Positions 18,910 through 59,470 of a stretch of 64,000 nucleotides of DNA are shown here, in pieces. The notes beneath the pieces were generated by a model. The model was not told the origin of the DNA and did no database searches. It worked only from the letters and a program-made list of their open reading frames with translations. Every line of letters starts with the position of its first letter. The first letter of the stretch is position 1. Made by a program: the position numbers and the translations under genes. The DNA lies in sequence record PP496441.1; one strand, written 5' to 3'.

Positions 18910-20388
18910 ATGAAATCTGTAGCCGTTGACTACCAAAAGATAGCCAAGGAATGCCAGTGCACCGAGCTGCCTTCCAAGGTAAGAGTTACTCGTGCACGGG
19001 TCTATCCAAACTTGAGGACGTGCCTACTCTTCCTCAAGTACGATGCCAAAGGTGAACTGGTACAAGCCGAGATCACTGCGCCGTACGACACGTCCACCGA
19101 GCCAAAGGTGAGGGTGCTCAAGCACCCGGACAAGAAGTCCGACTTCCTTTCATTATACAGGGCGCTGATCCGCCACCAGATCATACCCGAGTCTATTCCG
19201 AAGAAAGGTAACGGGATTGCACCAACGCTGGAGGTCATCGGCACACTGGTGAGCCTGCTGCCGGAACGGGATGTCGAAACCTTCCGTACGCTGACCCCGG
19301 CCATCCAGACTGGCAGCGTCATGTACGTCCCGCTGGTCACGTCCCGGCCAATGCCCATGGTGCAACACTGGATACCTGTTGACCAGCATTCAGAGCTGGG
19401 CATGATCGAGCTAGTCGATACGGATAGCAAGCCTTTCCTTAATCAGTGGGTCAACAGGTTGAGCAACACCGCCACTGGTTATGTGATCTACACCCCCGAA
19501 GGCTCACACGGTCAGGAACTAGCCTGCTTCCGGGTGCCCAATGTGCAAGGGGAGGAACTGTGTGTGGTCAAGAAGGTTGACTTCACCCTGACTGTTGCTC
19601 GCACGCTCAAGCCGGTACTGACTGTATCCACCAAGAGTACTCGGGCAGTGTCCCGCATTCCCCTACCCCACTATCTGATGCTACGCAATCACCACATCAA
19701 GGTGGGCACGGTTATTTCCCTGCGTCGTAACGACCGAGGTGGGTTGGTGTACCATGAGACGGTGGCCGAGGAAGGCATGACACCCCTCCCACTGTGCCCG
19801 CACTGCCACAGTGGGTCTGTGCTGCGAGGTAGTAGCAATGACGTGTACTGCAATAACGATTCATGCCGAGGCCTAGCCATTGTGCGACTTCGCTACATCT
19901 TGAACAACAAGCTGGACGTCAAGTACCTGAGCGACAATAAGGTAACGGCGCTGATCAATGACAAGCAGGACCTGTTCAGCTTGCTTAAGACCCCGACGCA
20001 CCAGTTACGGCACAGACCTGGCTTTGGTGCACGTACCGTGGACGCACTGGAGGAGAAGCTTAACACTATTGCCGGTCTTCCACTGCACACACTGGCCGAG
20101 ATGTCCTGCGCTTTCTACAACGTGGGCGTGCCCCCACTGGATGAGATGGTGTTCAAGAAGATCTTTTCCGTTATGTCGCTTGACTACCTGAAAGCGCTGC
20201 CGTCTACCGGCAAGATGTACAGTCAGCTGCTCGACATCGAAGGTATCCGCAACAACCGCGCAGTGGCTTTCCTTGCTGGCTGGCCTGCATTTCAACAGTG
20301 GATGATAGACCTGAACGCTGCCCTACAGTCTCGCATCGCAATCTCCTCCACGGTAAATAACCCGAAACAAATTCGAGGTGTGAAATGA
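18910..20388 (+). CDS. degenerate NAD-dependent DNA ligase-like protein (OB + Zn finger + HhH)
   Basis: TVARTLKPV...HIKVGTVISL (LigA OB-like), CPHC..YCNNDSC Zn finger, PGFGARTVDAL HhH; no KxDG adenylation motif seen. Confidence 0.6.
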   Translation: MKSVAVDYQKIAKECQCTELPSKVRVTRARVYPNLRTCLLFLKYDAKGELVQAEITAPYDTSTEPKVRVLKHPDKKSDFLSLYRALIRHQIIPESIPKKGNGIAPTLEVIGTLVSLLPERDVETFRTLTPAIQTGSVMYVPLVTSRPMPMVQHWIPVDQHSELGMIELVDTDSKPFLNQWVNRLSNTATGYVIYTPEGSHGQELACFRVPNVQGEELCVVKKVDFTLTVARTLKPVLTVSTKSTRAVSRIPLPHYLMLRNHHIKVGTVISLRRNDRGGLVYHETVAEEGMTPLPLCPHCHSGSVLRGSSNDVYCNNDSCRGLAIVRLRYILNNKLDVKYLSDNKVTALINDKQDLFSLLKTPTHQLRHRPGFGARTVDALEEKLNTIAGLPLHTLAEMSCAFYNVGVPPLDEMVFKKIFSVMSLDYLKALPSTGKMYSQLLDIEGIRNNRAVAFLAGWPAFQQWMIDLNAALQSRIAISSTVNNPKQIRGVK

Positions 20389-21149
20389 ACAATCAAAACA
20401 GAACTCGTATCGCTGTGCTTGTCGGCGGCGGTCTGGACTCACATGCGTACATGGTATTGAAAGCCGACCAGCCTCAGACAGACTTCATTCATGTGGACTA
20501 CGGCCAGCGGGTTGCAGTAGCCGAGAGAAACGCCGTGTTGCAAATGGCTGAGAAGCTGGGCATTGCCCGCAGCCGGGTGTACACGCTGATCTGCAACAAG
20601 AAGAATCACATGCGCAAGGTCAATGACGGTGTGGGTGTGTTGTTTGGCACCGGCCCGGTCGAGATGGACAATGCGTTTGTTAAGGGACGTAACCTGTTCC
20701 TGATTCAGAAGGCCATCGAGCTGGGCTACGGTCACGTGCACTTGACGCTGACCCAAGAGCGTGGCCGGATGTTCCCCGATGCCGATCTGGCATTCGTCCA
20801 GCTGGTTGACAACCTGATGCACCGCAGTTATGACGTGAGGGTATCCGCCCCCTACATCATGGAAGACAAGCATCGGGTGATGTTCAAGGCGTATCGGCAT
20901 TGCCCCGAGTTCCTCGATATGTCTTTCACGTGCTGGGTAGGTCCTTATGTGGAATGTGGCACGTGCCCGCACTGCGTCAAGAAGGAAAAGATTCGAGCCG
21001 AGATGATCGTTGAGAAGATTGAATACGATCTCAGCAAGGATGAACGTGAGGCGCAGTGGGAGCAAGTCAAGGCAGGCTACGGCGACGCGTTGAAGCCCGC
21101 TGAGACCATCAACATGAACATTCAGGTTGTTGACGGAGGACTGAAATGA
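20385..21149 (+). CDS. queC: 7-cyano-7-deazaguanine synthase-like PP-loop ATPase (QueC paralog 1)
   Basis: VGGGLDS, DYGQR..AERNA, FVKGRN, FPDAD, TCW..CGTCPHC Zn site. Confidence 0.85.
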   Translation: MNNQNRTRIAVLVGGGLDSHAYMVLKADQPQTDFIHVDYGQRVAVAERNAVLQMAEKLGIARSRVYTLICNKKNHMRKVNDGVGVLFGTGPVEMDNAFVKGRNLFLIQKAIELGYGHVHLTLTQERGRMFPDADLAFVQLVDNLMHRSYDVRVSAPYIMEDKHRVMFKAYRHCPEFLDMSFTCWVGPYVECGTCPHCVKKEKIRAEMIVEKIEYDLSKDEREAQWEQVKAGYGDALKPAETINMNIQVVDGGLK

Positions 21150-21856
21150 ACAAGTTCTTAGGTTGGTTCAAGCGTCTGCTGGATAAGAAGCACAAGTCGA
21201 TCACGATGACGTTGACCGACGCCGAAGGTAAGTTGGTCACCATCCACATACCGCAAGGTGCGGGTGTCGAATACACGCTCTCGAAGTCGGGCACCCACTT
21301 GAACGTCTCAGTTAAAGACGACGTCTTCATGTTGCGCACGAATGGCGCTGGAGGCGGTGGCAGTGGAAGTTCCAAGCCCGGTCTCAACGGTGGCCCCGGC
21401 CATACACCTATCCCCCGGTCCCCAAGCTTCACGGGCGCTGGTACGCCGAACTACGGTCACGCAGGCGACCCGCCTGTTGGTGCTCAAGCTTCGTTCCCTA
21501 TCGGCGCCCGAGCAACTGTTTCTGGTGGTGGGCGCGTTGGTGGCCTGTCAGGTGGAAGCGCAAACGGCACAATGGCTGGTGGTGGAGATGGCTTCGTTCC
21601 CTCTCCAATCCGTAGCTCTGATCGAGCTTACCTGATTAGAGGTTTGTATTACGTCATCACGACGAAGAAGATAACGGGAGAGCAATACCCGATCCATGAG
21701 CTTCTGCATTGGGGTAAGAAGTCAATCGAACTCATGGGCAAGTTCTCCACCGTCCGAGACGCTATCGACGAACTCAAATTGAAGACGGGTATCCCATTCG
21801 AAGACCTGACGGACTATCAGGTTGATTCCCTTCCCAAACGACTGTGCAAGCCTTGA
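21146..21856 (+). CDS. hypothetical protein with Gly/Pro/Ser-rich central linker
   Basis: 236 aa between the two queC-like genes. Confidence 0.7.
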   Translation: MNKFLGWFKRLLDKKHKSITMTLTDAEGKLVTIHIPQGAGVEYTLSKSGTHLNVSVKDDVFMLRTNGAGGGGSGSSKPGLNGGPGHTPIPRSPSFTGAGTPNYGHAGDPPVGAQASFPIGARATVSGGGRVGGLSGGSANGTMAGGGDGFVPSPIRSSDRAYLIRGLYYVITTKKITGEQYPIHELLHWGKKSIELMGKFSTVRDAIDELKLKTGIPFEDLTDYQVDSLPKRLCKP

Positions 21857-21894
21857 TCGGGTAAATGGCCCGTAACTAATCCGGAGACACCAGC

Positions 21895-22713
21895 ATGACC
21901 ACTGCGCCCCCAAAGATTATCGTTGCATTCAGCGCCGGTACAGATTCAACTACAGCGGCCTACTACTATCGCAAGCTCGGCTATCAGGTAACGCTGGCCG
22001 TGTTCGATGACGGCGCATGCAACGATCCACTTGACCCTCTGTACGATCCGAACAAGCCGAAGGACTTGACCAACTTCTCGGATGAGTTCTACGATTACGT
22101 ACGGATTCACCAAGAGCACACGGAAGGCCATCTTCAGTTCGACTTCGTGGAGATTCGTTATCCGCAACTCGCATTGCTGGAAGCCAACAAGACAGCCAAG
22201 CCCGGTCGGGACAATGCAGCAGCAGCAGAGGCTGACGGCTTGGGCTTCTGGGTCGGCTTCAAGGGCCTGATGGCAATGTTGCTGATGAGCCACGGCGCCG
22301 CCAATGGTTACGAGGCAGTAGTCTTCGGCCACATGCCGTACAACAACCATTACGAAGATGAGCTGCCCCAGAACTTCGAGCTGCTGCGTCAGTACATGGT
22401 TACGGCCTATGGCAGCCGAGTGGAAATTCCTCAGATCTACCACCCGTTCTATCGACCTAATTTCGATACCAAGGAAAAGGTTATTGAGCTGGCGCAGGCA
22501 ATCGGCGTGCCCTTGCGAGATACCTATTCGTGTCGCCGAGGTGAAGTAGAAACCCGAGGTATCCTCCTGCCACTTCTGCGTGGCGGTAACTCCAACTACG
22601 TGAGCCCCACCTACCGTTGGAAGCATTGTGGTACGTGTGAGAACTGTGTCGAACGCAAGCGAGCCTTCGCGGCGCTGGGCATGAAAGATCCTGCCCCTTA
22701 TATGGAACATTGA
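21895..22713 (+). CDS. queC: QueC-like PP-loop ATPase (paralog 2, divergent)
   Basis: FSAGTDS, TKEKVIELAQAIGVPLRDTYSC, CGTCENCVERKRAF. Confidence 0.75.
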   Translation: MTTAPPKIIVAFSAGTDSTTAAYYYRKLGYQVTLAVFDDGACNDPLDPLYDPNKPKDLTNFSDEFYDYVRIHQEHTEGHLQFDFVEIRYPQLALLEANKTAKPGRDNAAAAEADGLGFWVGFKGLMAMLLMSHGAANGYEAVVFGHMPYNNHYEDELPQNFELLRQYMVTAYGSRVEIPQIYHPFYRPNFDTKEKVIELAQAIGVPLRDTYSCRRGEVETRGILLPLLRGGNSNYVSPTYRWKHCGTCENCVERKRAFAALGMKDPAPYMEH

Positions 22714-22714
22714 T

Positions 22715-23731
22715 ATGGCCCTTTCAATCTGGCCGCTGACCGAAGGTGAACTCGGTCAGGGCCTCGTCAACGAACTGAATCGTACCAGCAAGGCGCTGGT
22801 GAACCGGAGTATGTGGTCTTTGCCATTGCTCCGGCGGTTGTTTTATCGGCGCACCGAGATTGGTGTCCCGGAGCTACTCCACGTCTGTACCAGCATTCAT
22901 CGGGGCAAGACTTACTTCTGCCTGTTGGTGAACTTCCGAGACGTGGTGATGGGCAACCCCGAGCAATACGGATGGGACCTAGCTGGCCGGTGGTTGTTCT
23001 ACGATGTGGATCTGCTGGATACCCCGGAATTTAAACAGGTAAACGCGGCTATTCGTAAGGTGGCTACGGTCAACACGGTTACCTACGGTCAAGCATTCGT
23101 TCCGGATGAAGGTGGTATGGGGGAGGAGCACTGGATCAAGAAACTGAAAGGTAACTACCGCCCCCACATCTTCGGCGAAAAGTCAAAACAGGTTATCGTC
23201 AGTCAGACCTGCGGACACGCGGCTACTCACGTGCTGACCGAGGCAGTGATGTCATTCGGTATCCAGCGCGCTGAGAGATTTCTCGCGGAAGGTCAGTCGG
23301 ATGTCATGCCGGAGTTGTATGACCTACCCATGCAGCTAGCCGGTCTAGGCTCGATCCCCGGAACCCGGATTGGCACCGTGTCGCTCACCTGCCGGGATAC
23401 CCATGCGCTGATCGGTACCCTGTCGTTCTACGTTGTGGCGGGCTTGGGTCACAGTGATATCTTGTATATGCACGAGATGCTGATTGATCCGGATCCGAAG
23501 TGGAAGCATCTATCGGTGGCCGTCAACTTGCACATTCAGGCAATCATGTATGTGCGCTATCTAAACAACCGATCTGATCGGGCTTCGGACTTGGTTATCA
23601 ACCTCGGATTCAACTTGGACGAGAAGTACAACACATACAAAGAGGTGTTCCGTCCGAACAAGTCCGAAATGGAAATCTATACCGGCATGCACACCGAGCC
23701 AGGCGTCCCACTGTCCTGTTTCAAGGGGTAA
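22715..23731 (+). CDS. Fem/ATE1/Bpt-like GNAT-fold transferase 1
   Basis: C-terminal IDPDPKWKHLSVA...INLGFNLDEKYNTYKEVFRP resembles the YLGY..YK..FRP end of aa-tRNA transferases. Confidence 0.5.
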   Translation: MALSIWPLTEGELGQGLVNELNRTSKALVNRSMWSLPLLRRLFYRRTEIGVPELLHVCTSIHRGKTYFCLLVNFRDVVMGNPEQYGWDLAGRWLFYDVDLLDTPEFKQVNAAIRKVATVNTVTYGQAFVPDEGGMGEEHWIKKLKGNYRPHIFGEKSKQVIVSQTCGHAATHVLTEAVMSFGIQRAERFLAEGQSDVMPELYDLPMQLAGLGSIPGTRIGTVSLTCRDTHALIGTLSFYVVAGLGHSDILYMHEMLIDPDPKWKHLSVAVNLHIQAIMYVRYLNNRSDRASDLVINLGFNLDEKYNTYKEVFRPNKSEMEIYTGMHTEPGVPLSCFKG

Positions 23732-23734
23732 GAC

Positions 23735-24736
23735 ATGTACACTCCGTATTCCCAAAACAGTCTGATGCAATCGATCCCGCTGGATGACCAAGGTACATTC
23801 GCCCATCCACCGTACACGATGGAAGGAGAGTTCACCGACGTGTGGACGAATCCAAACCTATATGGATTCGTCAGCCTGTTGAACGGCCAGAGCAATAGCC
23901 GGGCATATCGAGACTGGATGACCACCCACAATCTTCCAGCCCTGTTCCTCGGTCCGCACCATGAAGACAACTTCTGGTTTGAATTCAGCACTGGTCTCGA
24001 TTCCAACTGCACGCTGGATTACAACGAGATCAACGTCCAAGGCAACCTGCAGGACTTCCTTGGGAGATTGACGTCATCTCGCCGTCGCTCCGTGCTCAAG
24101 GCAAAGGAAACGGATACAATGATCCACAAGGCAGGCTCGGTAGCCAACTTCAACCTGTATCATCCGGTGGAGGGTAGGCTGTATAGTCTGACCGTGATTC
24201 ACGAACGCCGGGTGATGAAAGATATTTCCGAGTTTATCGAATCGAAACTCTGGAGTATGAAGCATACGCCTACTGACCTCACGTACGGTGCATTCACCAC
24301 TCTGATGGACTACATCCGGTTGAAGCAGCGAGATGACACGCCGCTGGGCCACCGGTTGCGCAACGTACAGCTCTTGGTCATTCGAGATGAACGCTCCGGG
24401 TTTATCGTGTCAGTTCATCTGGTGGCGATCAACACGTTGAAAGATGATTCCATGAACCCCACCAAGACGTACATGCACTCCTTCGCACGCATCACTGTTC
24501 TCCCTGCACGTATCGCCTTACTTGCGTTGATCAAGGCGGTTCAAGAGTTAAACGTCACCAGTCAGTACGCGTCCCGTGCACTGGCGAAGATCGACTATCT
24601 TGATGTGAGCAACGTGGTGCTGTCCGAGCGAGAGCAGTACAAGTCGGACTTCTTAACCGGCAAATGCCAAGTGCGTGCGTGGGCGTCCCCGGCGCTGCTG
24701 GAACGGCAGTTACCTTTCGTTACGCCGATCCCGTAA
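23735..24736 (+). CDS. Fem/Acetyltransf_6-like GNAT-fold transferase 2
   Basis: LQDFLGRLTSSRRRSVLKA helix and terminal YLD..EQYKSDF. Confidence 0.5.
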   Translation: MYTPYSQNSLMQSIPLDDQGTFAHPPYTMEGEFTDVWTNPNLYGFVSLLNGQSNSRAYRDWMTTHNLPALFLGPHHEDNFWFEFSTGLDSNCTLDYNEINVQGNLQDFLGRLTSSRRRSVLKAKETDTMIHKAGSVANFNLYHPVEGRLYSLTVIHERRVMKDISEFIESKLWSMKHTPTDLTYGAFTTLMDYIRLKQRDDTPLGHRLRNVQLLVIRDERSGFIVSVHLVAINTLKDDSMNPTKTYMHSFARITVLPARIALLALIKAVQELNVTSQYASRALAKIDYLDVSNVVLSEREQYKSDFLTGKCQVRAWASPALLERQLPFVTPIP

Positions 24737-24790
24737 CTCTGTAAATGATGGGAACAGCCCCACCATCACTTCATCTCTAGGGTAGTTCCC

Positions 24791-25843
24791 ATGCAAGACT
24801 TCGATAAGATCATGATCGACAGTAGTTTGACATCAAATCTGGTGTACGCAGGCTTGGGTAGCTTGATCACACCCCGTGCACTTGACCTGCTGATCGAACA
24901 TCAGGCTGCACTGGAAAACGTATACGCCAATCTGGAAACAGCGTATCAGATTACCCCACCCTTCCCCTGTGAAGCTGCATTCAATTCCCCTGACAAAGAT
25001 CCTGTGCTGGTCGCCGACTATCTGAATGCTACTCCCGCCATCCGTTGCGGAGAGCTGGCTGGATTCGAGGCAAAGCCCGGCAGTTACTACCACGCCCCCG
25101 CTGCTGGCATCTGCCCGGAACATCGCATCGACGTACGAGGTATGTCTTTGCGTGAGTTCGATCACTATCTGGTTGAGCGGGCGGAGGTGTCACGGATCAC
25201 TACCAATCTGGTGGCCGACAAGTTCCGCTGTGAGACTCATGTGTACAAAGTGGATGAAGATCATATCCTGATCCATGACGCCGAACGAGTTGGGATCAGC
25301 CAGACGGACTTCCGCCGCATGTGGGCGCAGACCCGCCGCCGGGAAATCGCTGATAATTATCTGCAGCACATGCCCATCGAAGACTCCGCCAAGGATGATC
25401 AGGTGGTGCGACTGATCAACGAAGACGTAGCACGGGTGTTCGCCCAGAACGTCGACTACGACCGCATGATTCCGCCCGAGCTGATCTTCGATGGTCAGGG
25501 CAAGCCGGTGCTGACCGTGCTGAAAGATTGCAACGCCAAGGTATTGGGCATTGGTGTGTACGTCATCTACAAGTCAGCTGACCCAGAGCATGACAGCGAA
25601 CTGCACTGGCGTGGCGCTTTCTACGATCACGAAGATCCGCGTACTGCATCCATGGGCATTGAACACGCTCTGGTTGCCAGCGCACTGCACACAGCGTACG
25701 CCTGCAACGCAGTTCTCTATCTGACCAAGGCACCGAAGTCCGTGTGTGACGCATGGAAGACGGAAGTGCACCAAGGTTACGGGCTGGTCCGTAATGCGAT
25801 GCCGGAACTGTCTGACACCCCTTACATTCTGGCTATCCAGTAA
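24791..25843 (+). CDS. Fem/ATE1-like GNAT-fold transferase 3
   Basis: VLGIGVY...AFYDHEDPRTASMGIEHAL...LYL resembles ATE/Bpt FYDP..SLG. Confidence 0.45.
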   Translation: MQDFDKIMIDSSLTSNLVYAGLGSLITPRALDLLIEHQAALENVYANLETAYQITPPFPCEAAFNSPDKDPVLVADYLNATPAIRCGELAGFEAKPGSYYHAPAAGICPEHRIDVRGMSLREFDHYLVERAEVSRITTNLVADKFRCETHVYKVDEDHILIHDAERVGISQTDFRRMWAQTRRREIADNYLQHMPIEDSAKDDQVVRLINEDVARVFAQNVDYDRMIPPELIFDGQGKPVLTVLKDCNAKVLGIGVYVIYKSADPEHDSELHWRGAFYDHEDPRTASMGIEHALVASALHTAYACNAVLYLTKAPKSVCDAWKTEVHQGYGLVRNAMPELSDTPYILAIQ

Positions 25844-25876
25844 ATAGCCGGTAACTCCATCCATTGAGGTACTTCC

Positions 25877-27961
25877 ATGAAATCCGTGAACCCCATCTTC
25901 AAGCACGTTCCCCAGTTCGACTGGCCTGTCATCCCTCGTGCACAGTGGGAAGAGATCATCAAGGGAAAAGAGCATGTGATGTTCGACTCCTTCTCGCAGC
26001 TCGCTCAAGTGTTGGCTATCCCGGTGAGCAGTTACCAGTTCTACTTCGAAGATGGGTCCACGTTGTTCGCCGGTCCCGAAGCAACCTTCACCGCCGCGCC
26101 GTACCCGCTGTATCAGGACCTTGAATTCGTCCTGACCCCTGACGAGACGTTGGTGCCGGGTCTTGCACTGGATACCAAACCGTGGGGCCTGTACACCGAC
26201 GAATGGGTGGACAACTACGAAGGTGCGGACAAGGAAGACATCGGCAACAAGACCGGGTTCGAATTCATTCCGCTGTCGGACGCCTTGAAACTGGTGGTCC
26301 TCAACACGGAGACCATGCAGCTCCAGTACACTGCCATCGAGAGCTTCACGTACGACGGCGTGACTTACGTATACCTGCTGGCCGATGGCGTGTGCTGGGT
26401 ACTGGCGGGCAAGTCCGGTGGTCTGGTTGCCAGCGAGCATGACAAAGGTGCTGCGTTCATCATGGTGTCCCATCCCGAGTTCGCCGGGTGCAGCGTAGAC
26501 AACATGTATCCAAGTGAGTTCGGTGAAGCGGAAGCGACGTTCTACGTTCAAGACGAGGAACACAATTACCTGGACGCGGCTAACCGCATCTTCGAGGAAG
26601 CCAAGGACGTAGGCGCTGGCACGTTCCTGACCATTGAGACCGGTGATGGATTGCCGACCGCGCTGGCGTACAACCTGCGGTACAGTGATGTGGCCCACGT
26701 TAACCTGCCGATGCACAACATCCACCAGTTCACTTCTCTGCACGTACGACTGGGTGAGACTCCTAACTTTTCCGAGGCCCCGGAAGCGTGCCGCATGAAA
26801 GAGGTGATGGAGTATCTGGCGGACCCTGAGTCCCCGGTAGATCATTACTGGTCGGCCATCATGGTACTGGAGAAGAACTTCCCCGGTTTCGCCGACGCCC
26901 TGAAAGACTCCAGTGTCCCGACCCGTGACATCGTGCACTCCAAACAGGCGTTCAGCTTGGAGATCGATCGCCAGTTCGGCAAGGAAGTGGCAAGCAAGAT
27001 CGGCCTGAACACTGGCGTATTCGCCCAAGTGAAAGACCGTGATGAGTGGCTGACCCGTCAAGACGATTTTCCTACCGACAAGGTGGCCGTCAAGTACAAC
27101 ACCAAACACTTCATCGGCATCTTCGACAAGGACGAGGTATCGAATTCCATCAACATGTGGCTGGCCGGTCAACCCGGAGAGTCGCTGATGATCGAAGAGT
27201 ACTTCGGTGAGGGCAATCAGGAATTCAACCTGTGCTATGTGATCAACGAAGAGTTTGTGCAGCCGACGCTGTTCCTGTGCGAAGTCAACAAGATCCTCGG
27301 TAATGACACCGGCGGCAAAGGTGGCAACACGCTGGCCTGCCATGATGCTCGTATTAACAAGTACCCTGAGTTCTTCGAGCCGGTAAATAATGCGCTTGCT
27401 AACCTGCATGAGCACGTGGAAGGTGTGAAGGGCTGGGTTGACCTGAGCTTCATGGTCCGCGACGGCATCCCTTACTTCACAGAGTGGTGCATTCGCATCG
27501 GCTGCTCCAACAACGCCACCATCGTGCGCCAGATGGAGACCCCTCTCGACGTTCTTTTGACTAACGTGGTTAACAAGGTGCATACCGAGCTGTCTTGGAA
27601 GCACTCCATGTCTGTTAGCGTGGACATCTACAGCATGCCGCTGTCCGCAGGCAATGATGCCAACATGCAGTTCACCGACTCGCTGACCACTCCGGTAGAG
27701 ATGGTGTCCCCACTCAATCTGGAATTGGCAGCGGAGAGTTTCTTCGACCCGATTGATTCGGCCTGGAACGCGGTGTACGACGGCTACATTGTCGAGGCGT
27801 ACAACCGATATGGCACCGTCTCGGGGTATTCCACCAACTGGAACTTCGCCTGCAATGCGGCGTACAATCACTTGAAAGATCAGTCGGTGTTGTACGGGGC
27901 ATACCGCGAAGCGCCTGCCCACCACGACCCACTGACTCTGTTCCCTTTCCTCAAGGCGTAA
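25877..27961 (+). CDS. PurD-like ATP-grasp amide ligase with ~250-aa extra N-terminal domain
   Basis: LEIDRQFGKEVASKIGL, VAVK, MIEEYFGEGNQEF, NKILGNDTGGKGGNT, YFTEWCIRIG parallel PurD motifs. Confidence 0.75.
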   Translation: MKSVNPIFKHVPQFDWPVIPRAQWEEIIKGKEHVMFDSFSQLAQVLAIPVSSYQFYFEDGSTLFAGPEATFTAAPYPLYQDLEFVLTPDETLVPGLALDTKPWGLYTDEWVDNYEGADKEDIGNKTGFEFIPLSDALKLVVLNTETMQLQYTAIESFTYDGVTYVYLLADGVCWVLAGKSGGLVASEHDKGAAFIMVSHPEFAGCSVDNMYPSEFGEAEATFYVQDEEHNYLDAANRIFEEAKDVGAGTFLTIETGDGLPTALAYNLRYSDVAHVNLPMHNIHQFTSLHVRLGETPNFSEAPEACRMKEVMEYLADPESPVDHYWSAIMVLEKNFPGFADALKDSSVPTRDIVHSKQAFSLEIDRQFGKEVASKIGLNTGVFAQVKDRDEWLTRQDDFPTDKVAVKYNTKHFIGIFDKDEVSNSINMWLAGQPGESLMIEEYFGEGNQEFNLCYVINEEFVQPTLFLCEVNKILGNDTGGKGGNTLACHDARINKYPEFFEPVNNALANLHEHVEGVKGWVDLSFMVRDGIPYFTEWCIRIGCSNNATIVRQMETPLDVLLTNVVNKVHTELSWKHSMSVSVDIYSMPLSAGNDANMQFTDSLTTPVEMVSPLNLELAAESFFDPIDSAWNAVYDGYIVEAYNRYGTVSGYSTNWNFACNAAYNHLKDQSVLYGAYREAPAHHDPLTLFPFLKA

Positions 27962-27964
27962 TCC

Positions 27965-29128
27965 ATGAGCACTCCATTCCAAGAGTTCACCCTAGAAGGG
28001 TGGATTCGCTACATGAGAGATGAAAGCATCATCTGGCGCGCGTACGCTGATGGTCATCCGGATAAGGTCGAGTTCAGCCCGGAGTGGCGTGACGAGATGT
28101 ATCGGTTGATGGTGCAGTTCAAAGATCTGCTGCCGATGTCGTTTTCCAATCCGGTGTACGGCTTCACTGAAGGTTGGCTGGAAGGGCTCGGACTCCAGCC
28201 CTTTTATGGCGATGATCCGTTCAATCCGATGGTGCAACCGCTTAGCCACCCTCTGGTGCATGTGGGGCTTCCGTTTACTCTGAGCGAGCTGACGGCGGGC
28301 GTATGGGACTGTCAGTCCCTGAGCGCTCACCTGGAGCGTCCGCTGCTGGTCGATACATTCGAACCGATCCCAGTGCCATCTATTAGCCTGGACGCTTACA
28401 AAGCCGTCCTGACCGTACGGGACCGGGAAGAGATCGTGATGAGTGCGGGAACCCCGGTGAACTACTTCCTCTGGTTGAATAGTCCGATCACCGAACTCAA
28501 AGACGACTTCGACGTTTATCTGGCCAGCCTGACCAAGAAGCGCCGCTACAAAGTGAAGCAGGCACTGGCGACAGTGGGCACCGAAGAGAACCCGGCTATC
28601 AGCGTCAGTACTGGATCTCGTTTCGGCGAAGGGTTGTTGTCCGATCAGGTGAACAGCATCCTCGCGACTTTCGAAGATCCGGTGGACATAGAGTGCATGC
28701 TTCTTCAGCTGCTGTTCGGGGTGGCAACCTGCAATACCCATCCGCATCTTGTCGATCTGGTTTGTGCAGACCAGCAGTTGGGGATCTTCATCAAGCGCAA
28801 CGGCCACACGATGAATTTCCTCTACAACCGTGACCCGGACAACCGCGCTGACTCAGGCATCAACCTGCTGACCCAGTACGTGCGCCATCTGCACATGAAC
28901 CGCCCGGAAGGTGTGATGTACGTGGACCCGACATGTCGATATCGGCCTGACGAGGACAGTATGAACACCTACAAGCGGGTGATCACCAACGAGAACCGGT
29001 ATCACCCAATGCCGTTCGTCTCGGCTGATCCTGCGCACATCGAAGGTGTTATTACCCCGGCGTTCATTGCAGGTCATTGGCAGATGTCGGCGTCCAATGG
29101 CCCGGCCAATCCTGAGATGATGGAGTAA
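27965..29128 (+). CDS. Fem/Acetyltransf_6-like GNAT-fold transferase 4
   Basis: DDFDVYLASLTKKRRYKVKQA signature; RDPDNRADSGINLL...YVD...YKRV. Confidence 0.65.
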   Translation: MSTPFQEFTLEGWIRYMRDESIIWRAYADGHPDKVEFSPEWRDEMYRLMVQFKDLLPMSFSNPVYGFTEGWLEGLGLQPFYGDDPFNPMVQPLSHPLVHVGLPFTLSELTAGVWDCQSLSAHLERPLLVDTFEPIPVPSISLDAYKAVLTVRDREEIVMSAGTPVNYFLWLNSPITELKDDFDVYLASLTKKRRYKVKQALATVGTEENPAISVSTGSRFGEGLLSDQVNSILATFEDPVDIECMLLQLLFGVATCNTHPHLVDLVCADQQLGIFIKRNGHTMNFLYNRDPDNRADSGINLLTQYVRHLHMNRPEGVMYVDPTCRYRPDEDSMNTYKRVITNENRYHPMPFVSADPAHIEGVITPAFIAGHWQMSASNGPANPEMME

Positions 29129-29130
29129 CC

Positions 29131-30078
29131 ATGGCAAAGCACAAGGTCAAAAGGTTGGAAATCAACCACATCTACGACTTCTACCCGTTGTATCAGGTGA
29201 TGTACGGGCGTGGCATGGAGACCAAAGCGTTCGAGGTCTCCAAGTTCGCCAAGATGGTGCTGGACTTCGAAGCATCAACCAGTACTCGCCGGAAGTGGGA
29301 CGTGCTGGAACCTTTCAGCGGTATCAGCGAGCATGAACACTTCTTCGCTGCTACTGGCCTGAACATCGAGCACTACACCGGCATGGACATCGTGGTTCCA
29401 GATGGGGCCAAAAACGTCATTCAAGGTGACATCATCACCGACACCCTTCCGTTTCACGTCAACGCGGTGTTCGCCTTCTACTACAGCTTGCAGAATGTAC
29501 GGGACGCCAAGACTGGCATGCACACGCGGGAAAAGCTGGTGGAGTTCTTCGACAACATCCTCGGCCATCTGCAAGTCAATGCGAACAAGAGCCGTATGCC
29601 CGCAGTGTTCGCTTTCCACCTTGACCAGCCTGAAGACCCTAATTACTATCTGACGTCCCGTGCCGACGTTGGAGGTGAACAGTCATGGACCGCACCCGCG
29701 TGTGGTCTGCTGGGGCAGTGGGTCAAGTGCAAACCGACCGACACTCTGGAAGTGAAGTGCAATCTGGACACCTGGTACAACCGTGTGCAGTGCACCGCGT
29801 ACGATCAGGCGGAGGATATCCAGATTCTGGTAAATGGGCGAGTAGTGGCGACCGTTGAGATCGAACAGCCGTTCACCCATCGGGTCTGGACCGAGCATGA
29901 GGTGATCGACATCCTGCGGGGTCTGGACTACAATCTGCACTTCCACATGTACAACGGCACCATCTCCAATTACGACTTCTTGATGACCCGTTTGGAAGAC
30001 AAGCCCGTTCCCGGCGATGAAGAGGCTAATACTAATCAGATGACAACTGATATGCTGGTTGTCGTTAATCCGAGGTAA
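29131..30078 (+). CDS. class I SAM-dependent methyltransferase 1
   Basis: VLEPFSG (I), YTGMDI (II), VIQGDI (III), AFYYSLQ; paralog of the next gene. Confidence 0.7.
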   Translation: MAKHKVKRLEINHIYDFYPLYQVMYGRGMETKAFEVSKFAKMVLDFEASTSTRRKWDVLEPFSGISEHEHFFAATGLNIEHYTGMDIVVPDGAKNVIQGDIITDTLPFHVNAVFAFYYSLQNVRDAKTGMHTREKLVEFFDNILGHLQVNANKSRMPAVFAFHLDQPEDPNYYLTSRADVGGEQSWTAPACGLLGQWVKCKPTDTLEVKCNLDTWYNRVQCTAYDQAEDIQILVNGRVVATVEIEQPFTHRVWTEHEVIDILRGLDYNLHFHMYNGTISNYDFLMTRLEDKPVPGDEEANTNQMTTDMLVVVNPR

Positions 30079-30080
30079 GA

Positions 30081-30998
30081 ATGGCTAAGCCCAAGATCCC
30101 TACACGAACCATCCCCACGTTGTACCAAGACTGGGGGTTGTACAGCGCCATCTGCGAACTGCCGCAGGAGACGATGCTGATGATGTCGCGCTTCGTGGCA
30201 GACCGGACCATCGAACATGCCGAGCGCCATGACCTGGAAAGTGTGGCGATCATGGAGCCCTTTAGCGGGCCGATCCCGTATTACGAGCCAGACATCCGAA
30301 GCTTCCTGACTCGCGCCCGTGTTGACCTGGATACGTACGATCATGTCGAGTACCTTGATCACGGTGGATTGTCGGAAGACAACAATATCATCATCGGTGA
30401 CATCACCACCATCGACCTGAAACAGAAATACGACGTCATCTACGGCAGTTACGGCAGCTTGGCCTGCCTGCTGCTGGATCACACGCACAACAAAGCGTAT
30501 GAGAAGTCACACGCAGCTCTGGTCAACATTCGCGAGCACCTGAAACCCAACGGCATCTTCGTCCTGAACGCCAACGGATCCAGCGAAAGCCTGCTGAATA
30601 ACCTGTTGAACTCCGATGAGCCGGATCAAGAGATTCGCGTCCGTCCGGGATCGCAGTTGGGCAAGGCGTTCCGAATCAAACCAGACAGTAACGCGCTGCT
30701 TCGTTTCTCCTACAACGTGGAGTACGACCGACGCACCACCTGCACCATGTGCCATTACAGCGATATGGTGCTGTCTGTAAATGGGGTTGACATCCAGCGC
30801 TGGGAGGTGGAATCCCCGACGTATCTTGCGCCGCTGGATGAACCCGAACTAATTCGAATGGCAGGTATGGCTGGTTTCAATCTGGACAACACCGAGTTCT
30901 ACGGATTGGACACCACCGGTTATCCTGCCTTCTTCAAAATGGATACGGTCTGCGACGGGTCATGGTCACCCGCCGAGTTCGTAGTCTTTCGCACCTAA
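30081..30998 (+). CDS. class I SAM-dependent methyltransferase 2
   Basis: IMEPFSG, IIGDITTIDLKQKYDVI, LVNIREHLKPNGIFVL. Confidence 0.85.
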   Translation: MAKPKIPTRTIPTLYQDWGLYSAICELPQETMLMMSRFVADRTIEHAERHDLESVAIMEPFSGPIPYYEPDIRSFLTRARVDLDTYDHVEYLDHGGLSEDNNIIIGDITTIDLKQKYDVIYGSYGSLACLLLDHTHNKAYEKSHAALVNIREHLKPNGIFVLNANGSSESLLNNLLNSDEPDQEIRVRPGSQLGKAFRIKPDSNALLRFSYNVEYDRRTTCTMCHYSDMVLSVNGVDIQRWEVESPTYLAPLDEPELIRMAGMAGFNLDNTEFYGLDTTGYPAFFKMDTVCDGSWSPAEFVVFRT

Positions 30999-31008
30999 CG
31001 AGGTTCCT

Positions 31009-32244
31009 ATGAGCGTTATCATCCCCACCGTAGCGATGGAGAGTGGTCAGCCAGACATGATCATTCAAGGCTGTTCCACGGGTCGCCTCTCTATGGCCGA
31101 GCCTAACGAGAGCGCCAAACCCAAGTCTTCCAAGAAGCTGTACGAACGTGAAGACCTGATGGCGTACGACAGCGAGTCGGAGCACTGGCAGAAGCAGTTG
31201 GCCCGCCGCTACGCGCATCACGGTGAGATGGTCGGCGTGTTGAACAACGTCGAGGTGGTGCCGGAAGCCACCTATCAGAACTTCGACATGAAGATCACCC
31301 CGTACACCGCGCAGTTGATGGACCAGAACGACCCCAACTGCCCGATCCGTTTGCAGTACATGCCGACCAACAAAGAGCTGGAGTCTATTCAGCGCGAAGA
31401 GACCATGCACAACGAGCTGGGCGAGGAAGAGGACACCATCCCCGGTACCTCGGTCGTGCACCGCTACCCGCGTCGCGTCTTGTTCCTGACCACTACCCAA
31501 TGCGCCAGCTTCTGCCGTTACTGCACCCGTGCACGCATCGTCTCCCACGGCGGCGAAGCGGCGATCACCAAGAAGCACCTTGACGCCAGCATCGACTACA
31601 TCGCCGGGAACAAGGACATCGAAGACGTGCTGCTGTCCGGCGGTGACCCGTTCATCCTCCCAGACAACAAGCTCGACGAGATCCTCGGTCGTATCCGCGC
31701 CGAAGCACCTCACGTTCGCTTCCTGCGTATCGGTAGCCGACTGCCGGTACAGATGCCGACCCGTATCACTCCAGAGCTGTGCGAGATTCTGGAACGCCAC
31801 AACGTCAACATGGTCAACATCCATGTGAACCATCCGAAAGAAGTAACCCCTCTGCTGGCCTCCCGGATGAAGATGTTGCGCAAAGCTGGCGTGATGATCG
31901 GCAATCAGGCCGTCATGCTGAAAGGCGTGAACGACTCCATCGAGGTGATGACCGAGCTGTGCTTGCGTATGGTCGAGATGGGCGTGCGTCCGTACTATGT
32001 CTACTCCAACGATCCGGTGGCGCAGGCTGCGCACTTCACCGTGTCGCTGAAAGAGATGCTGAACATCAACGAGGGTATGCGCGGCTTCCTGTCTGGCCCG
32101 GCTATGCCAACCTTCGTGGTAGACGGTGTGGGTGGCTTGGGCAAGATGCCGGTGCAGAAAGAGTACGTCAGCTTCGATAAGAACGGCGGTATCTTCGCCC
32201 AGAACTTCGAAGGGAAAACGGCCCGCATGCCCCATCTGGAATAA
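31009..32244 (+). CDS. kamA: lysine 2,3-aminomutase (KamA/EpmB family radical SAM, PLP)
   Basis: HRYPRRVL, CASFCRYCTR (CxxxCxxC), LLSGGDP, LRIGSRLPV, HVNHPKE, NQAVMLKGVND, PTFVVDGVGGLGK (PLP lysine). Confidence 0.93.
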   Translation: MSVIIPTVAMESGQPDMIIQGCSTGRLSMAEPNESAKPKSSKKLYEREDLMAYDSESEHWQKQLARRYAHHGEMVGVLNNVEVVPEATYQNFDMKITPYTAQLMDQNDPNCPIRLQYMPTNKELESIQREETMHNELGEEEDTIPGTSVVHRYPRRVLFLTTTQCASFCRYCTRARIVSHGGEAAITKKHLDASIDYIAGNKDIEDVLLSGGDPFILPDNKLDEILGRIRAEAPHVRFLRIGSRLPVQMPTRITPELCEILERHNVNMVNIHVNHPKEVTPLLASRMKMLRKAGVMIGNQAVMLKGVNDSIEVMTELCLRMVEMGVRPYYVYSNDPVAQAAHFTVSLKEMLNINEGMRGFLSGPAMPTFVVDGVGGLGKMPVQKEYVSFDKNGGIFAQNFEGKTARMPHLE

Positions 32245-55789: not shown

Positions 55790-56761
55790 ATGAAAGATAT
55801 GCGCTATACCGAACTGTTCTATTCCCTCCAAGGTGAGGGGTTGCGCGTTGGAGTGCCGTCGGTATTCTTCCGCATGTTCGGTTGCAACTTCGAGTGCAAG
55901 GGATTCTCCAATCCTGAGATGAAAGATCCCAACGTGATCCCGGCCATCAACCTGCTGTCGATCAACGAAGCGGATCTGGAGCTGGGCTGTGACTCTCGTT
56001 ACAGCTGGCACAAGGACTATCGCAACCTGGCGATTAAAGCGGCACCCCATGAGGTGGCCAACCGGCTGATCGACTTCACCAAAGAGAAGTTCATGGCAGC
56101 TGCGGCTCGCTGGCCTAAACGTAATCTGGAGGGCAAGGTAGTTAAGCTGATCCCCGGACAAGCCCCGGAAGTAGGCGTCCAGACGCTTACGCTGGCTAAT
56201 GTACCAGACTGGGTGTTCACCGGCGGAGAACCGTTCATGCAGCAAGAGCAGCTGGAAGGCCTGCTGCGTCACGCCATGTACGTTGTGGAAGAGGAGGACG
56301 TTAACTTTGGCCTGCTTGGCCTGCCGATGCTGACTTTCGAGACCAACGCCAGTATTTCGATGAGAGACTCCATGCTGGATTGTCTCAAAGATTACAACGA
56401 TGGCTTCGGCGACGTGCACTTCTCTAACAGCCCCAAGCTGTCATTCACGGGAGAGCATCGCAACGCGGCTCTGAAGCCCTACGTTATCGAGCAACAATGC
56501 TCCATCGGGGGCTCCAGTTCGTTCAAGTTCGTGGTGCGCCCTGCTCGCGAAGACTTCGATGAGCTGATGGAGTTCATGCAAGAGTATCAACCCTACATGG
56601 ATGAAGGTAGTATCGAGAACATATACGTCATGCCGGTCGGTGCCAGCCTACATCAACAGCAGGCCATCGCCACACAGGTTGCCGAGCTGGCACTGGAATA
56701 CGGCCTGTCCTACAGCCCCCGACTCCAGTGTGACCTGTGGGCCAACAAGATAGGGACGTGA
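55790..56761 (+). CDS. queE: 7-carboxy-7-deazaguanine synthase (radical SAM)
   Basis: ELFYSLQGEG, FRMFGCNFEC...GCDSRYSW, FTGGEP, FETN, SPKL, KFVV, YVMP, SPRLQCDLW. Confidence 0.92.
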   Translation: MKDMRYTELFYSLQGEGLRVGVPSVFFRMFGCNFECKGFSNPEMKDPNVIPAINLLSINEADLELGCDSRYSWHKDYRNLAIKAAPHEVANRLIDFTKEKFMAAAARWPKRNLEGKVVKLIPGQAPEVGVQTLTLANVPDWVFTGGEPFMQQEQLEGLLRHAMYVVEEEDVNFGLLGLPMLTFETNASISMRDSMLDCLKDYNDGFGDVHFSNSPKLSFTGEHRNAALKPYVIEQQCSIGGSSSFKFVVRPAREDFDELMEFMQEYQPYMDEGSIENIYVMPVGASLHQQQAIATQVAELALEYGLSYSPRLQCDLWANKIGT

Positions 56762-56763
56762 TC

Positions 56764-57108
56764 ATGGATTCCTTTCAAGAGTGGTTCATTTACGACGTGA
56801 TGTTTTGGGTGACGACAGGTGCCATGTTACTCGGTGCCTTGATGAGCTTACTGGTGACACTGGTACTGGTCAAGATGGACCAGCGCATGGTAAATAAAGG
56901 TTACTGGAGTGCACCCCAAAATCGGGGTGATCCGGCCTTCCTGTGGTTCCACATAACCATGACCGTGATCTTCTTTCTCCTTGTCATCACGGACCTCATA
57001 AACGCCAGACTTTTCACTATCATCGGAACCCTTGGGTACTGCGCTATCTCTATATACGCGCTGATCCTCAGGTTCCCCACAACTACCAACAAGGACACCC
57101 CGCAATGA
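56764..57108 (+). CDS. multi-TM membrane protein
   Basis: three hydrophobic segments. Confidence 0.65.
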   Translation: MDSFQEWFIYDVMFWVTTGAMLLGALMSLLVTLVLVKMDQRMVNKGYWSAPQNRGDPAFLWFHITMTVIFFLLVITDLINARLFTIIGTLGYCAISIYALILRFPTTTNKDTPQ

Positions 57109-58729: not shown

Positions 58730-59470
58730 ATGGCTATTGATGCACATAAGTATCCGTTGTTGGCGGCGGCTCAAGACCGACTCATCGAGTCTGGTCAGCG
58801 CTATTTTGCGAATGACAATATCCATCCGGTATTTGAATACCTGGACAACATGGCATTGCCTATGCCAGTCGGGGCTCAGACACTGGAGCAGATGAAGGAG
58901 GCTGTTCAAGAGAAGTACGGCGAGCTGCTGGAACTCCTCTTGATCGATTGGGCTGCGGATCATAACTCCGAAGGTACCCCGCGCCGTGTCGCCAAGATGC
59001 TGGTCGAGGAAACCTACAAGGGTCGCTATCAGCCGACGCCGAAGATCACCGCGTTCCCCAACGACAGCAAGCGTACTCAGATGATCGTGATCGGGCCGCT
59101 GCGCGTTGAGAGCCAGTGCAGCCATCACCATCAGAACATCCGGGGCTGGGCATGGGTCGGTGTTATGCCGTCGGAAGATGGTACACTGATCGGTCTGTCG
59201 AAGTTCAGCCGCCTACTTGATCATATCTGCCGCCGTCCTCAGATCCAAGAGGAAATGGTTGCTCAGGTGTGTCACCAGTTGAACGATCTGGTCAAGGACA
59301 ACCTCGGTGTCGCGGTCGTGATCAACGCAGAGCACCAGTGCATGGCCGTTCGGGGCGTGCAAGAGCCGTGTGCCCAAACCGTTACGTCGGAGATGCTGGG
59401 TGCGTTCCTCGAACCTGGTGTTCGTCAGGAGTTCCTGACCTACGTGCAAATGAACCCAGCCCCGTGCTAA
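58730..59470 (+). CDS. folE: GTP cyclohydrolase I
   Basis: TPRRVAKM, SQCSHH, GLSKFSRL, RRPQIQEE, AEHQCMAVRG, TSEMLGAF. Confidence 0.95.
   Translation: MAIDAHKYPLLAAAQDRLIESGQRYFANDNIHPVFEYLDNMALPMPVGAQTLEQMKEAVQEKYGELLELLLIDWAADHNSEGTPRRVAKMLVEETYKGRYQPTPKITAFPNDSKRTQMIVIGPLRVESQCSHHHQNIRGWAWVGVMPSEDGTLIGLSKFSRLLDHICRRPQIQEEMVAQVCHQLNDLVKDNLGVAVVINAEHQCMAVRGVQEPCAQTVTSEMLGAFLEPGVRQEFLTYVQMNPAPC

Follow-up and report, generated by a model that had tools for sequence, protein, structure and literature searches.

A conserved pair of QueC-family genes in large phages and its probable place in 7-deazaguanine DNA modification

Pseudomonas phage vB_PpuM-Pori-4 (PP496441.1, 202,632 bp) is a jumbo myovirus of Pseudomonas putida and an Estonian isolate. 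We analyzed a stretch of 64,000 nucleotides of its genome, hereafter the window, which encodes two divergent members of the QueC family, termed P1 and P2. The 6-kb region around the QueC genes is 100% identical to the phage record, and window positions were obtained by subtracting 138,632 from record positions. Judging from the family membership and conserved motifs of the proteins, from purifying selection, from the linkage of the genes in several lineages, and from predicted folds, we consider it somewhat probable that P1 and P2 form a conserved "twin QueC" pair that serves, in a clade of large phages, a pathway of 7-deazaguanine DNA modification. The two genes and the open reading frame (ORF) between them are all on the + strand, at the coordinates given in an initial annotation made from the letters alone:

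20385..21149, + strand: P1, type-A QueC paralog of 254 aa (Pfam QueC match and motifs)
21146..21856, + strand: Gly-rich ORF of 236 aa, a clade-specific insertion with conserved N and C domains around a linker
21895..22713, + strand: P2, type-B QueC paralog of 272 aa (Pfam QueC match in its C-terminal half, and PP-loop)

The mere presence of two QueC-like genes is not new, since both already bear the label "QueC-like queuosine biosynthesis protein" in the GenBank record, which lists the intervening ORF as hypothetical.

Examination of the genomic contexts of P1 relatives revealed a second QueC-family gene, repeatedly located directly downstream. When the paired genes were compared all against all, they split into a P1-like group, designated type A, and a P2-like group, designated type B. 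Type A was followed by type B in 12 independent lineages, namely the Pori clade (Pori-4 and eight sister phages, nine P. putida phages in all, the sisters being 84-98% identical to Pori-4 at the nucleotide level), L005, L006/L007, L009, L010, L011, the P0010 context, L012, L013, L021 (231 kb), L022 (210 kb), and L089 (174 kb). The sole exception to this order was a contig of at most 4.6 kb. Two small ORFs lie between A and B on the 235-kb contig of the P0010 context, an unrelated 292-aa ORF separates them in L013, and in L022 the intervening ORF belongs to the F338 family described below. L011, a contig from a metagenome-assembled genome labeled Oligoflexales, carries three QueC-family genes in tandem, first two of type A, 53% identical to each other, and then one of type B (L011:451-2390). 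Of 50,697 sequenced phages, the nine infecting P. putida alone have the pair. In IMG/VR, ordinary phage QueCs occur singly and give intermediate scores on both the type-A and the type-B hidden Markov models (HMMs). Other adjacent QueC pairs were also seen in IMG/VR (L034:9494-10922, L050:8996-10845, and L079:9186-10663), each with one canonical-like and one very divergent member; the divergent members in L050 and L079 form a long-branch clade of their own and precede the canonical gene. Paired QueC genes may thus have arisen more than once.

Compared directly with each other, P1 and P2 gave a blastp E-value of 0.003, with little similarity outside CGTCxxC. In a maximum-likelihood tree of 101 sequences, the context-verified type A proteins fell into one clade (SH-aLRT 98), and the type B proteins were grouped with a support of 88 (97 for the core); A and B were not sisters. 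Type B lay on the canonical QueC side of the tree, and type A beside short proteins with SGGxDS and Q(x)5E, some of which show every motif of the published Cap9 signature. This tree came from a quick search, was rooted at the midpoint, and is weak in its deep branches. The initial annotation had proposed placing the paralogs by phylogeny, and the tree does so for A and B, which are distinct; Cap9 entered it only through motif-flagged sequences, and the contexts of two of the short SGGxDS relatives, P0064 and P0102, were uninformative. As judged from their sequences, P1 and P2 are not recent or local duplicates; they are members of two separate orthologous groups and functionally distinct members of the QueC family. 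Both are under purifying selection, with dN/dS among the sister phages of 0.10-0.34 for P1 and 0.03-0.10 for P2, and neither gene looks dead, a fate that the initial annotation had allowed for one of them.

P1 matched the Pfam QueC family (PF06508) over residues 10-202 with an E-value of 6.9e-19 and 68.6 bits against a cut-off of 22. Its motifs are VGGGLDS (residues 13-19), DYGQR (38-42), GRN (101-103), and FPDA, followed by zinc cysteines spaced as C183-x7-C191-x2-C194-x2-C197, and the GGGLDS, DYGQR, and RN that had been read earlier from the translation are therefore genuine. An exhaustive HMMER search with P1 returned 498 relatives at E<1e-3, the nearest being proteins of 190-210 aa with 32-42% identity. 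A word-indexed protein search recovered the Pori clade only, and in IMG/VR a search with P1 alone found nothing, and one with a tighter type-A alignment yielded just two loci. The type A members of the Pori clade have a C-terminal tail of approximately 45 aa that is lacking in most type A proteins (approximately 200 aa), and in the sister phage Peetri P1 (L016:1686-2510) is 274 aa long, its C terminus extending 20 aa further.

Alignment of type A (A1) revealed invariant columns at D18, Y39, G40, E47, R102, N103, D132, C183, C191, C194, and C197, and a clade-wide signature composed of a GGGLDS P-loop, YGQ(x)5E, GRN, and (F/W)PD. Type A therefore shares with canonical QueC the fold, the PP-loop, the four-Cys zinc site, RN, and YGQ, and differs from it in several places. 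The first Ser of the canonical SGGxDS loop is replaced by Gly, a change that is invariant across type A; among the 150 cluster representatives nearest to P1, GGGxDS was found in 87, and since it is common to the type A relatives, we regard it as a family signature and not as decay. The canonical YxQxHxxE, whose Tyr is essential in E. coli (PMC13329287), is replaced by YGQ(x)5E, which lacks the His and is one residue longer in its spacing; the canonical QxHxxE occurred in only 8 of the same 150. VPxRN reads VKGRN, in which RN is invariant, and YPDC reads FPDA, in which the Asp is invariant, Tyr has become Phe, and Cys has become Ala; in E. coli QueC, the Y131F variant keeps partial activity (PMC13329287). 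The four Cys of the canonical C(x)8CxxCxxC site are invariant in type A, the first spacing being 7 in P1 and 8 in most type A proteins, and Trp takes the place of Tyr after the first Cys. When searched against solved structures, the type-A clade profile revealed as top hits QueC (2pg3, 2.9e-22, and 3bl5, 4.9e-20), followed by Cap9 (1.5e-16). Cap9 had been the only match of the single P1 sequence in the PDB (2.6e-8), and a closest relationship of P1 to Cap9 was discarded once QueC overtook it at the profile level.

P2 matched the same Pfam family at residues 129-260, corresponding to the C-terminal half, and at the PP-loop, above the gathering score (E-value 2.8e-12, 47.1 bits). It has an SAGTDS PP-loop (residues 13-18), FDDG, GFK, and YEDE, and neither YGQ nor RN, again in agreement with the earlier reading of the translation. 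The type-B alignment (A5) is invariant at S13, G15, D17, S18, F37, G121, K123, D155, C213, C245, C248, and C251, and the family signature is SxGxDS, FDD in place of YGQ, (F/W)K in place of RN, and YxDE. SAGTDS is thus a variant of the canonical SGGxDS consensus whose S-x-G-x-D-S is kept family-wide. GFK and YEDE stand where canonical QueC has VPxRN and YPDC, and both YGQ and RN are essential in E. coli QueC (PMC13329287). Type B nonetheless keeps the PP-loop, the zinc site, and the base-contacting Tyr and Asp, since Y153 and D155 align with those of Cap9 (10.1101/2025.04.06.647259). An insertion in the zinc site had been noticed in the initial annotation and is indeed present, although it measures 28 residues after SCRRG, which holds C213, and not approximately 24; 31 residues separate C213 from C245, and CGTCENC follows. 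The four zinc Cys are invariant in type B, and the first Cys-Cys spacing is variable, from 8 to 31 residues. The type-B profile matched Cap9 over the C-terminal half (2.9e-8), QueC over its full length (1.3e-6), and QatC only at the zinc knuckle (3e-3). Canonical bacterial QueC is the nearest outgroup of type B, which differs from it by the loss of YGQ, RN, and YPDC, by the Cys-Cys insert, and by being paired with type A.

The initial annotation had likened one paralog to the Cap9 and QatC enzymes, and we therefore considered whether the pair carries out a Cap9/QatC-like deazaguanylation of the N terminus of a protein of the phage or its host, the Gly-rich ORF being the acceptor or scaffold and a tRNA-guanine transglycosylase (TGT)-like protein taking the role of Cap10. 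Cap9 (PDB 9nto, type IV CBASS) and type A are alike in size class (approximately 190-210 aa in most), in Y/FxQ(x)5E, and in the lost His, and the tree places type A on one side with sequences that have the full Cap9 signature. A TGT gene next to a QueC gene is known from type IV CBASS as well (10.1101/2025.04.06.647259). Of the six Cap9 motifs (LxSGGxDS, Y/FxQ(x)5E, RN, H(x)4YxDCxxxF, PF(x)4K, and CE(x)6CxxCxxCxD), however, P1 matches two exactly and has PF(x)4K and the YxDC block as conservative variants, and P2 matches none; all six are present in 4 of the 150 nearest relatives of P1. No PADLOC model for CD-NTase, QatA, QatB, or QatD matched any of the ten operon proteins scanned, the only match being generic QueC, and an acceptor N terminus of the form M(G/S)G(G/S)G was found in no ORF of the genome. 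The phage context is one of DNA modification, including phage FolE and QueE-like genes that speak for bulk base synthesis, and not one of bacterial defense. Like P2, QatC has a lengthened spacing between the first two Cys and a CGxC knuckle; it differs in its size of approximately 400 aa, in being extended at both termini, and in a motif set of its own (PMC13329287); moreover, the long insert is not a trait of type B as a family. We consider protein deazaguanylation very improbable. The formation of an amide from CDG-AMP (CDG, 7-carboxy-7-deazaguanine) and a non-ammonia amine by Cap9 is nonetheless the chemistry that we propose for the phage pair, and the loss of the His together with Q(x)5E, common to type A and to Cap9 with its amide-only chemistry, is a suggestive but unproven sequence likeness.

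The Gly-rich ORF bears on the same question. It consists of an N domain (approximately residues 1-65), a Gly/Pro/Ser linker (66-152, 32% Gly), and a C domain (153-236), and begins with MNKF, so that the earlier remark that it does not start with Met-Gly stands. It is a real gene, since it is kept in all sister phages examined (76-98% aa identity) with a dN/dS of approximately 0.2, and the linker varies by in-frame indels that bring its length to 236-255 aa. No Pfam, PHROG, or PADLOC match was obtained, and the best Atlas scores were at most 0.48. An HMM matrix confined it to the nine Pori-clade phages and found it absent from 11 of 11 other A/B lineages, in which A and B abut or unrelated ORFs intervene; in L012, whose type B is 46% identical to P2 and which has strong synteny from helicase to gyrB, A and B abut without it. 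The Gly-rich ORF is therefore best seen as a lineage-specific insertion or passenger and not as a core part, and the role of acceptor or scaffold once suggested for it loses its footing. In a comparison with phage Lauda (window 21146-23731; sister phages L016-L020), dS was approximately 0.8-0.9 for the Gly-rich gene and F338, and 0.012 for P1 and 0.09 for F333. As these values lie far above those of the flanking genes, the Gly-rich gene and F338 exist as two old allelic types swapped by recombination.

Candidate genes for the supply of CDG and for the insertion of a modified base lie elsewhere in the genome. The product of gp105 (record 82055-83425, outside the window) matched Pfam TGT with 33 bits against a gathering score of 26.3 and aligned to ArcTGT, keeping DSGGFQ, the catalytic Asp, and the CxCxxC..HN zinc site. 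Type A is directly preceded by a gene of 412-501 aa in L006/7, L021, L022, and the P0005 context; the first three of these genes are orthologs of gp105, and the one in the P0005 context gives a faint TGT match. Two genes of the window are candidates for the early steps:

58730..59470, + strand: FolE, GTP cyclohydrolase I (Pfam GTP_cyclohydroI, 3.8e-39)
55790..56761, + strand: QueE-like radical S-adenosylmethionine (SAM) protein, CDG synthase-like, in a block of replication genes (annotation and Fer4_12)

FolE catalyzes the first step of 7-deazaguanine synthesis, and its orthologs stand beside the DpdA-A-B cluster in L006/7 and L022. The QueE-like protein has Fer4_12 (1.5e-6) as its only Pfam match, and its N terminus is 56% identical to bacterial QueE over 36 aa; QueE-like genes were also found near the A/B pair in L021 and L089. 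The Pori-4 protein reads GCNFECKGF where CxxxCxxC is expected, the third Cys being off its usual position, and its sequence is that of an atypical QueE, if it is a QueE at all. The DpdA-like, FolE, and QueE-like genes, a decisive context that the initial annotation had overlooked, argue for DNA rather than protein as the target, and a phage tRNA is an unlikely target because no tRNA genes were found in the Pori-4 genome. Two other proteins had been entertained as the transglycosylase and were rejected: the 492-aa protein upstream of P1, which has a LigA-like fold, and the 408-aa "hypothetical protein" between the QueE-like and FolE genes (57105-58331), which proved to be a beta sliding clamp (0.95 by Atlas features, TM 0.75 by structure).

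The operon extends on the + strand from 18910 to 32244, and its genes abut or overlap, a tight structure that argues for a shared pathway. In a promoter and terminator scan of 17-34 kb, counts were not above those of shuffled sequence. Besides P1, P2, and the Gly-rich ORF, the operon comprises the following genes:

18910..20388, + strand: 492-aa LigA-like protein, with a stop codon that overlaps the start of P1
22715..23731, + strand: F338, predicted tandem-GNAT (dupli-GNAT) acyl- or aminoacyl-transferase (AlphaFold model and Foldseek)
23735..24736, + strand: F333, conserved with L012 (phmmer 1.9e-9 to L012_7163; no family match)
24791..25843, + strand: 350-aa protein, Pori clade only among the compared loci (no family match)
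25877..27961, + strand: 694-aa protein with an ATP-grasp domain at approximately 354-585, carboxylate-amine ligase type (TIGR00877 PurD, 2.4e-7)
27965..29128, + strand: F387, conserved with L013 (phmmer 1.5e-10 to L013_7091)
29131..30078, + strand: F315, predicted class I SAM-dependent methyltransferase (AlphaFold2 model and Foldseek)
30081..30998, + strand: 305-aa F315 paralog, methyltransferase-like (phmmer 2.4e-6 to F315 and 3.2e-9 to L013_3640)
31009..32244, + strand: KamA-family radical SAM and pyridoxal phosphate (PLP) aminomutase, lysine-2,3-aminomutase (LAM)-like (TIGR00238, AblA, LAM 2A5H)

The most consistent partner of the pair is F338, found in five lineages (the Pori clade, L012, L006/7, L021, and L022). 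Its AlphaFold2 model (pLDDT 61.9, pTM 0.59) matched in Foldseek the tandem GNAT protein 2wpw (7e-6), Eis2, and FemX with a probability of approximately 1, and in the AlphaFold Database FemA/FemB and BioF2-like proteins. The ATP-grasp protein, which also gave a marginal Pfam GARS_A match (0.034), occurs in four to five lineages, with orthologs in L005 (E-value 5e-40), L006, and L022. F315 yielded a better model (pLDDT 74.6, pTM 0.78) whose top Foldseek hits were CalS10 (1.3e-8, TMt 0.68), CypM, TylM1, KedS8, and MtfA, with class I methyltransferases in the AlphaFold Database; by its predicted fold, it is nearest to amine N-methyltransferases such as CalS10, CypM, and TylM1. F315 and its paralog, which has weak Pfam Methyltransf_31/12 matches, occur in three lineages, with orthologs in L012 and in L013 (two copies). 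The KamA-like protein scored 275 bits on TIGR00238 against a cut-off of 199 and matched AblA (4.3e-93) and LAM 2A5H (4.5e-79); relative to 2A5H, it conserves CASFCRYC (CxxxCxxC), GGLGK, and both Asp residues of a pair. We take the Lys of GGLGK to be the PLP lysine and the Asp pair to bind the epsilon-ammonium group of lysine, following the LAM literature. The gene is present in Pori-4, L006/7, and L022, with orthologs 43-44% identical. Amidoligase_2 was found in L005 and L006 only, and L013 has, directly 3' of type B, a gene for a 2OG-Fe(II) oxygenase (L013:10777-11391). None of the other lineages showed this tailoring enzyme, a hint that the end products differ from lineage to lineage.

The LigA-like protein stands somewhat apart. 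It matched NAD-dependent DNA ligases in the Atlas structure comparison (TM 0.51-0.59) and NCBIfam LigA over a region (1.6e-6), and it lacks a BRCT domain; the KxDG adenylation motif was not found in it. Its gene is translationally coupled to P1 and is kept upstream of type A only in Pori-4 and L012, the L012 ortholog carrying Pfam OB_DNA_ligase, and the Pori-4 genome has a separate full-length NAD-dependent ligase (Pori4_00144). The LigA-like protein may be a non-catalytic DNA-binding partner, and its membership in the pathway is uncertain.

Taken together, the recurrent partners are predicted to build a side chain that bears an amine, to couple it, and to acylate and methylate it. From this gene content we infer a sequence of chemical steps, with an amine and with DNA as the final acceptor. 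CDG would be supplied by FolE, the QueE-like protein, and probably host QueD. Type A, which keeps the base-binding and catalytic signature of QueC and Cap9, would adenylate the CDG carboxylate and form an amide, and type B would carry out a second, different ATP-dependent step or confer specificity for a non-ammonia amine, possibly in a heteromer with type A. The two subfamilies would thus activate the C7 carboxylate or amide in two different ATP-dependent reactions, at least one of them with a non-ammonia amine. Where the KamA-like gene is present, the amine would most likely be beta-lysine made by this LAM-like enzyme, in keeping with the earlier suggestion of beta-lysine and with the conserved Asp pair. 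The side chain would then be acylated or aminoacylated by the tandem GNAT, extended by the ATP-grasp protein, and N-methylated by the two methyltransferase-like proteins, and the DpdA-like gp105 would swap the base into phage DNA, presumably against host nucleases. The earlier idea that one QueC paralog joins CDG to a non-ammonia amine is made plausible by the KamA-like, tandem-GNAT, ATP-grasp, and N-methyltransferase-like context, and as chemistry it stays conjectural. Whether these phages, of approximately 170-235 kb, make a previously undescribed hypermodified base, namely a beta-lysine-type amide or amidine of CDG that is acylated and N-methylated through two QueC subfamilies, with type B re-tooled from ammonia to an amine, we judge to be nearly an even question, tilting slightly to the negative.

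Known phage DpdA systems (9g with dG+, CAjan with dPreQ0, CP220 with dADG and "QueC*", and the DpdL/M/N variants) resemble that of Pori-4 in their phage FolE, QueE, QueC-family, and DpdA-like proteins, and in them too extra tailoring enzymes set the final base. Of these features, Pori-4 has the TGT-family gene gp105 and FolE, and its QueE-like protein is divergent. The Pori-type system differs in having two QueC subfamilies together with tandem-GNAT, ATP-grasp, N-methyltransferase-like, and KamA-like proteins; a survey of the scanned window proteins and of the record annotation, narrower than the whole proteome, showed no Gat domain, QueF, or ArcS. Eight 7-deazaguanine DNA bases have been described, all with small C7 substituents, and none needs the Pori-type tailoring enzymes (10.1101/2023.04.13.536721). 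A literature search retrieved no paper that ties an aminomutase to a deazaguanine or DpdA system.

Amino-acid-derived side chains on a DNA base are found in the thymidine hypermodifications of phages M6, ViI, and PaMx11, which employ radical SAM and acyltransferase tailoring, and in N-acetyl-beta-lysine synthesis, the KamA-type aminomutase AblA is paired with the GNAT protein AblB. The logic of the Pori-4 route would be the same in both respects. The thymidine route proceeds through 5-hydroxymethyldeoxyuridine with a kinase and a pyrophosphorylase, whereas the Pori-4 route would use a transglycosylated G analogue and PP-loop adenylation.

A simpler account is that A and B are a split or heteromeric ordinary QueC, and that A, alone or jointly with B, makes only a known base (preQ0, 7-amido-7-deazaguanine [ADG], or an archaeosine-type base) for DpdA, with the other operon genes serving something else. 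This would agree with the profile of type A, nearest to canonical QueC, with the canonical outgroup of type B, with the differing partner content of the lineages, and with the linkage of QueC to FolE and QueE in the well-known FolE/QueE/QueC/DpdA phages that make dPreQ0, dADG, and dG+ (PMC6884629; 10.1101/2023.04.13.536721). A single QueC is enough in all characterized systems, however, and both A and B lack the His of YxQxHxxE, B lacking YGQ and RN as well (PMC13329287). F338 accompanies the pair in five lineages, KamA and ATP-grasp recur, and the overlapping and abutting operon genes speak for a shared pathway. We regard an ordinary QueC function of the pair as unlikely.

The tailoring enzymes could also belong to a pathway for a free conjugate of a 7-deazapurine and beta-lysine that serves as a metabolite, signal, or inhibitor and is not put into DNA. 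The combination of KamA with GNAT, ATP-grasp, and N-methyltransferases resembles natural-product tailoring, the nearest methyltransferase structures come from antibiotic pathways, and the DpdA-like gene of Pori-4 lies outside the operon. Against this, a DpdA-like gene abuts type A in four lineages, and FolE and QueE of the phage's own fit the stoichiometric demand of genome-wide base replacement. A free conjugate therefore appears quite improbable.

Several observations weigh against a twin QueC pair in DNA modification. KamA, ATP-grasp, Amidoligase_2, and methyltransferase content differs between lineages, so that different lineages may make different end products, or some of these genes may have nothing to do with the pair. 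In Pori-4, approximately 75 kb separate the operon from the DpdA-like gene and approximately 25 kb from FolE/QueE, and because of this distance the linkage of these genes to the operon is by synteny with other phages only. A profile of the DpdA-like proteins matched DpdA, Cap10, and tRNA TGTs in the PDB without discrimination. QueD was found neither by tblastn with bacterial QueD nor in the annotation; it may come from the host. Confidence in the F338 model is medium and the Foldseek TM-scores of this model are low, most A/B contexts are unannotated metagenomic contigs, and the isolation paper is silent on QueC and DNA modification (10.1101/2024.03.26.586772). A look for public sequencing runs of the phage found none listed. 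Given its QueC-nearest profile, type A may simply make preQ0 or ADG.

If the pair acts as proposed, the coupling of CDG to an amino acid followed by tailoring would constitute a new chemical class of DNA hypermodification, and types A and B would join the QueC fold as new functional subfamilies, beside the canonical, Cap9, QatC, LarE, and other clusters recognized at present (PMC13329287). The reaction of a carboxylate-AMP with a non-ammonia amine would then have arisen in phages as well as in bacterial defense, with type B as the small-molecule or DNA counterpart of the protein-deazaguanylation chemistry of Cap9 and QatC. Such DNA would likely be protected from restriction enzymes, and possibly from Cas nucleases, and the pathway enzymes could serve in enzymatic DNA functionalization. 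The host, P. putida KT2440, is a tractable and non-pathogenic chassis, and the nine isolates offer natural allelic variation.

Two reported properties of the G3 jumbo phages may be mentioned. DNA yields from these phages with a standard phage DNA kit were unusually low, and the prophages of KT2440 restrict them more than 1000-fold (10.1101/2024.03.26.586772). Either the low DNA yield or the restriction by prophages could relate to modified DNA.

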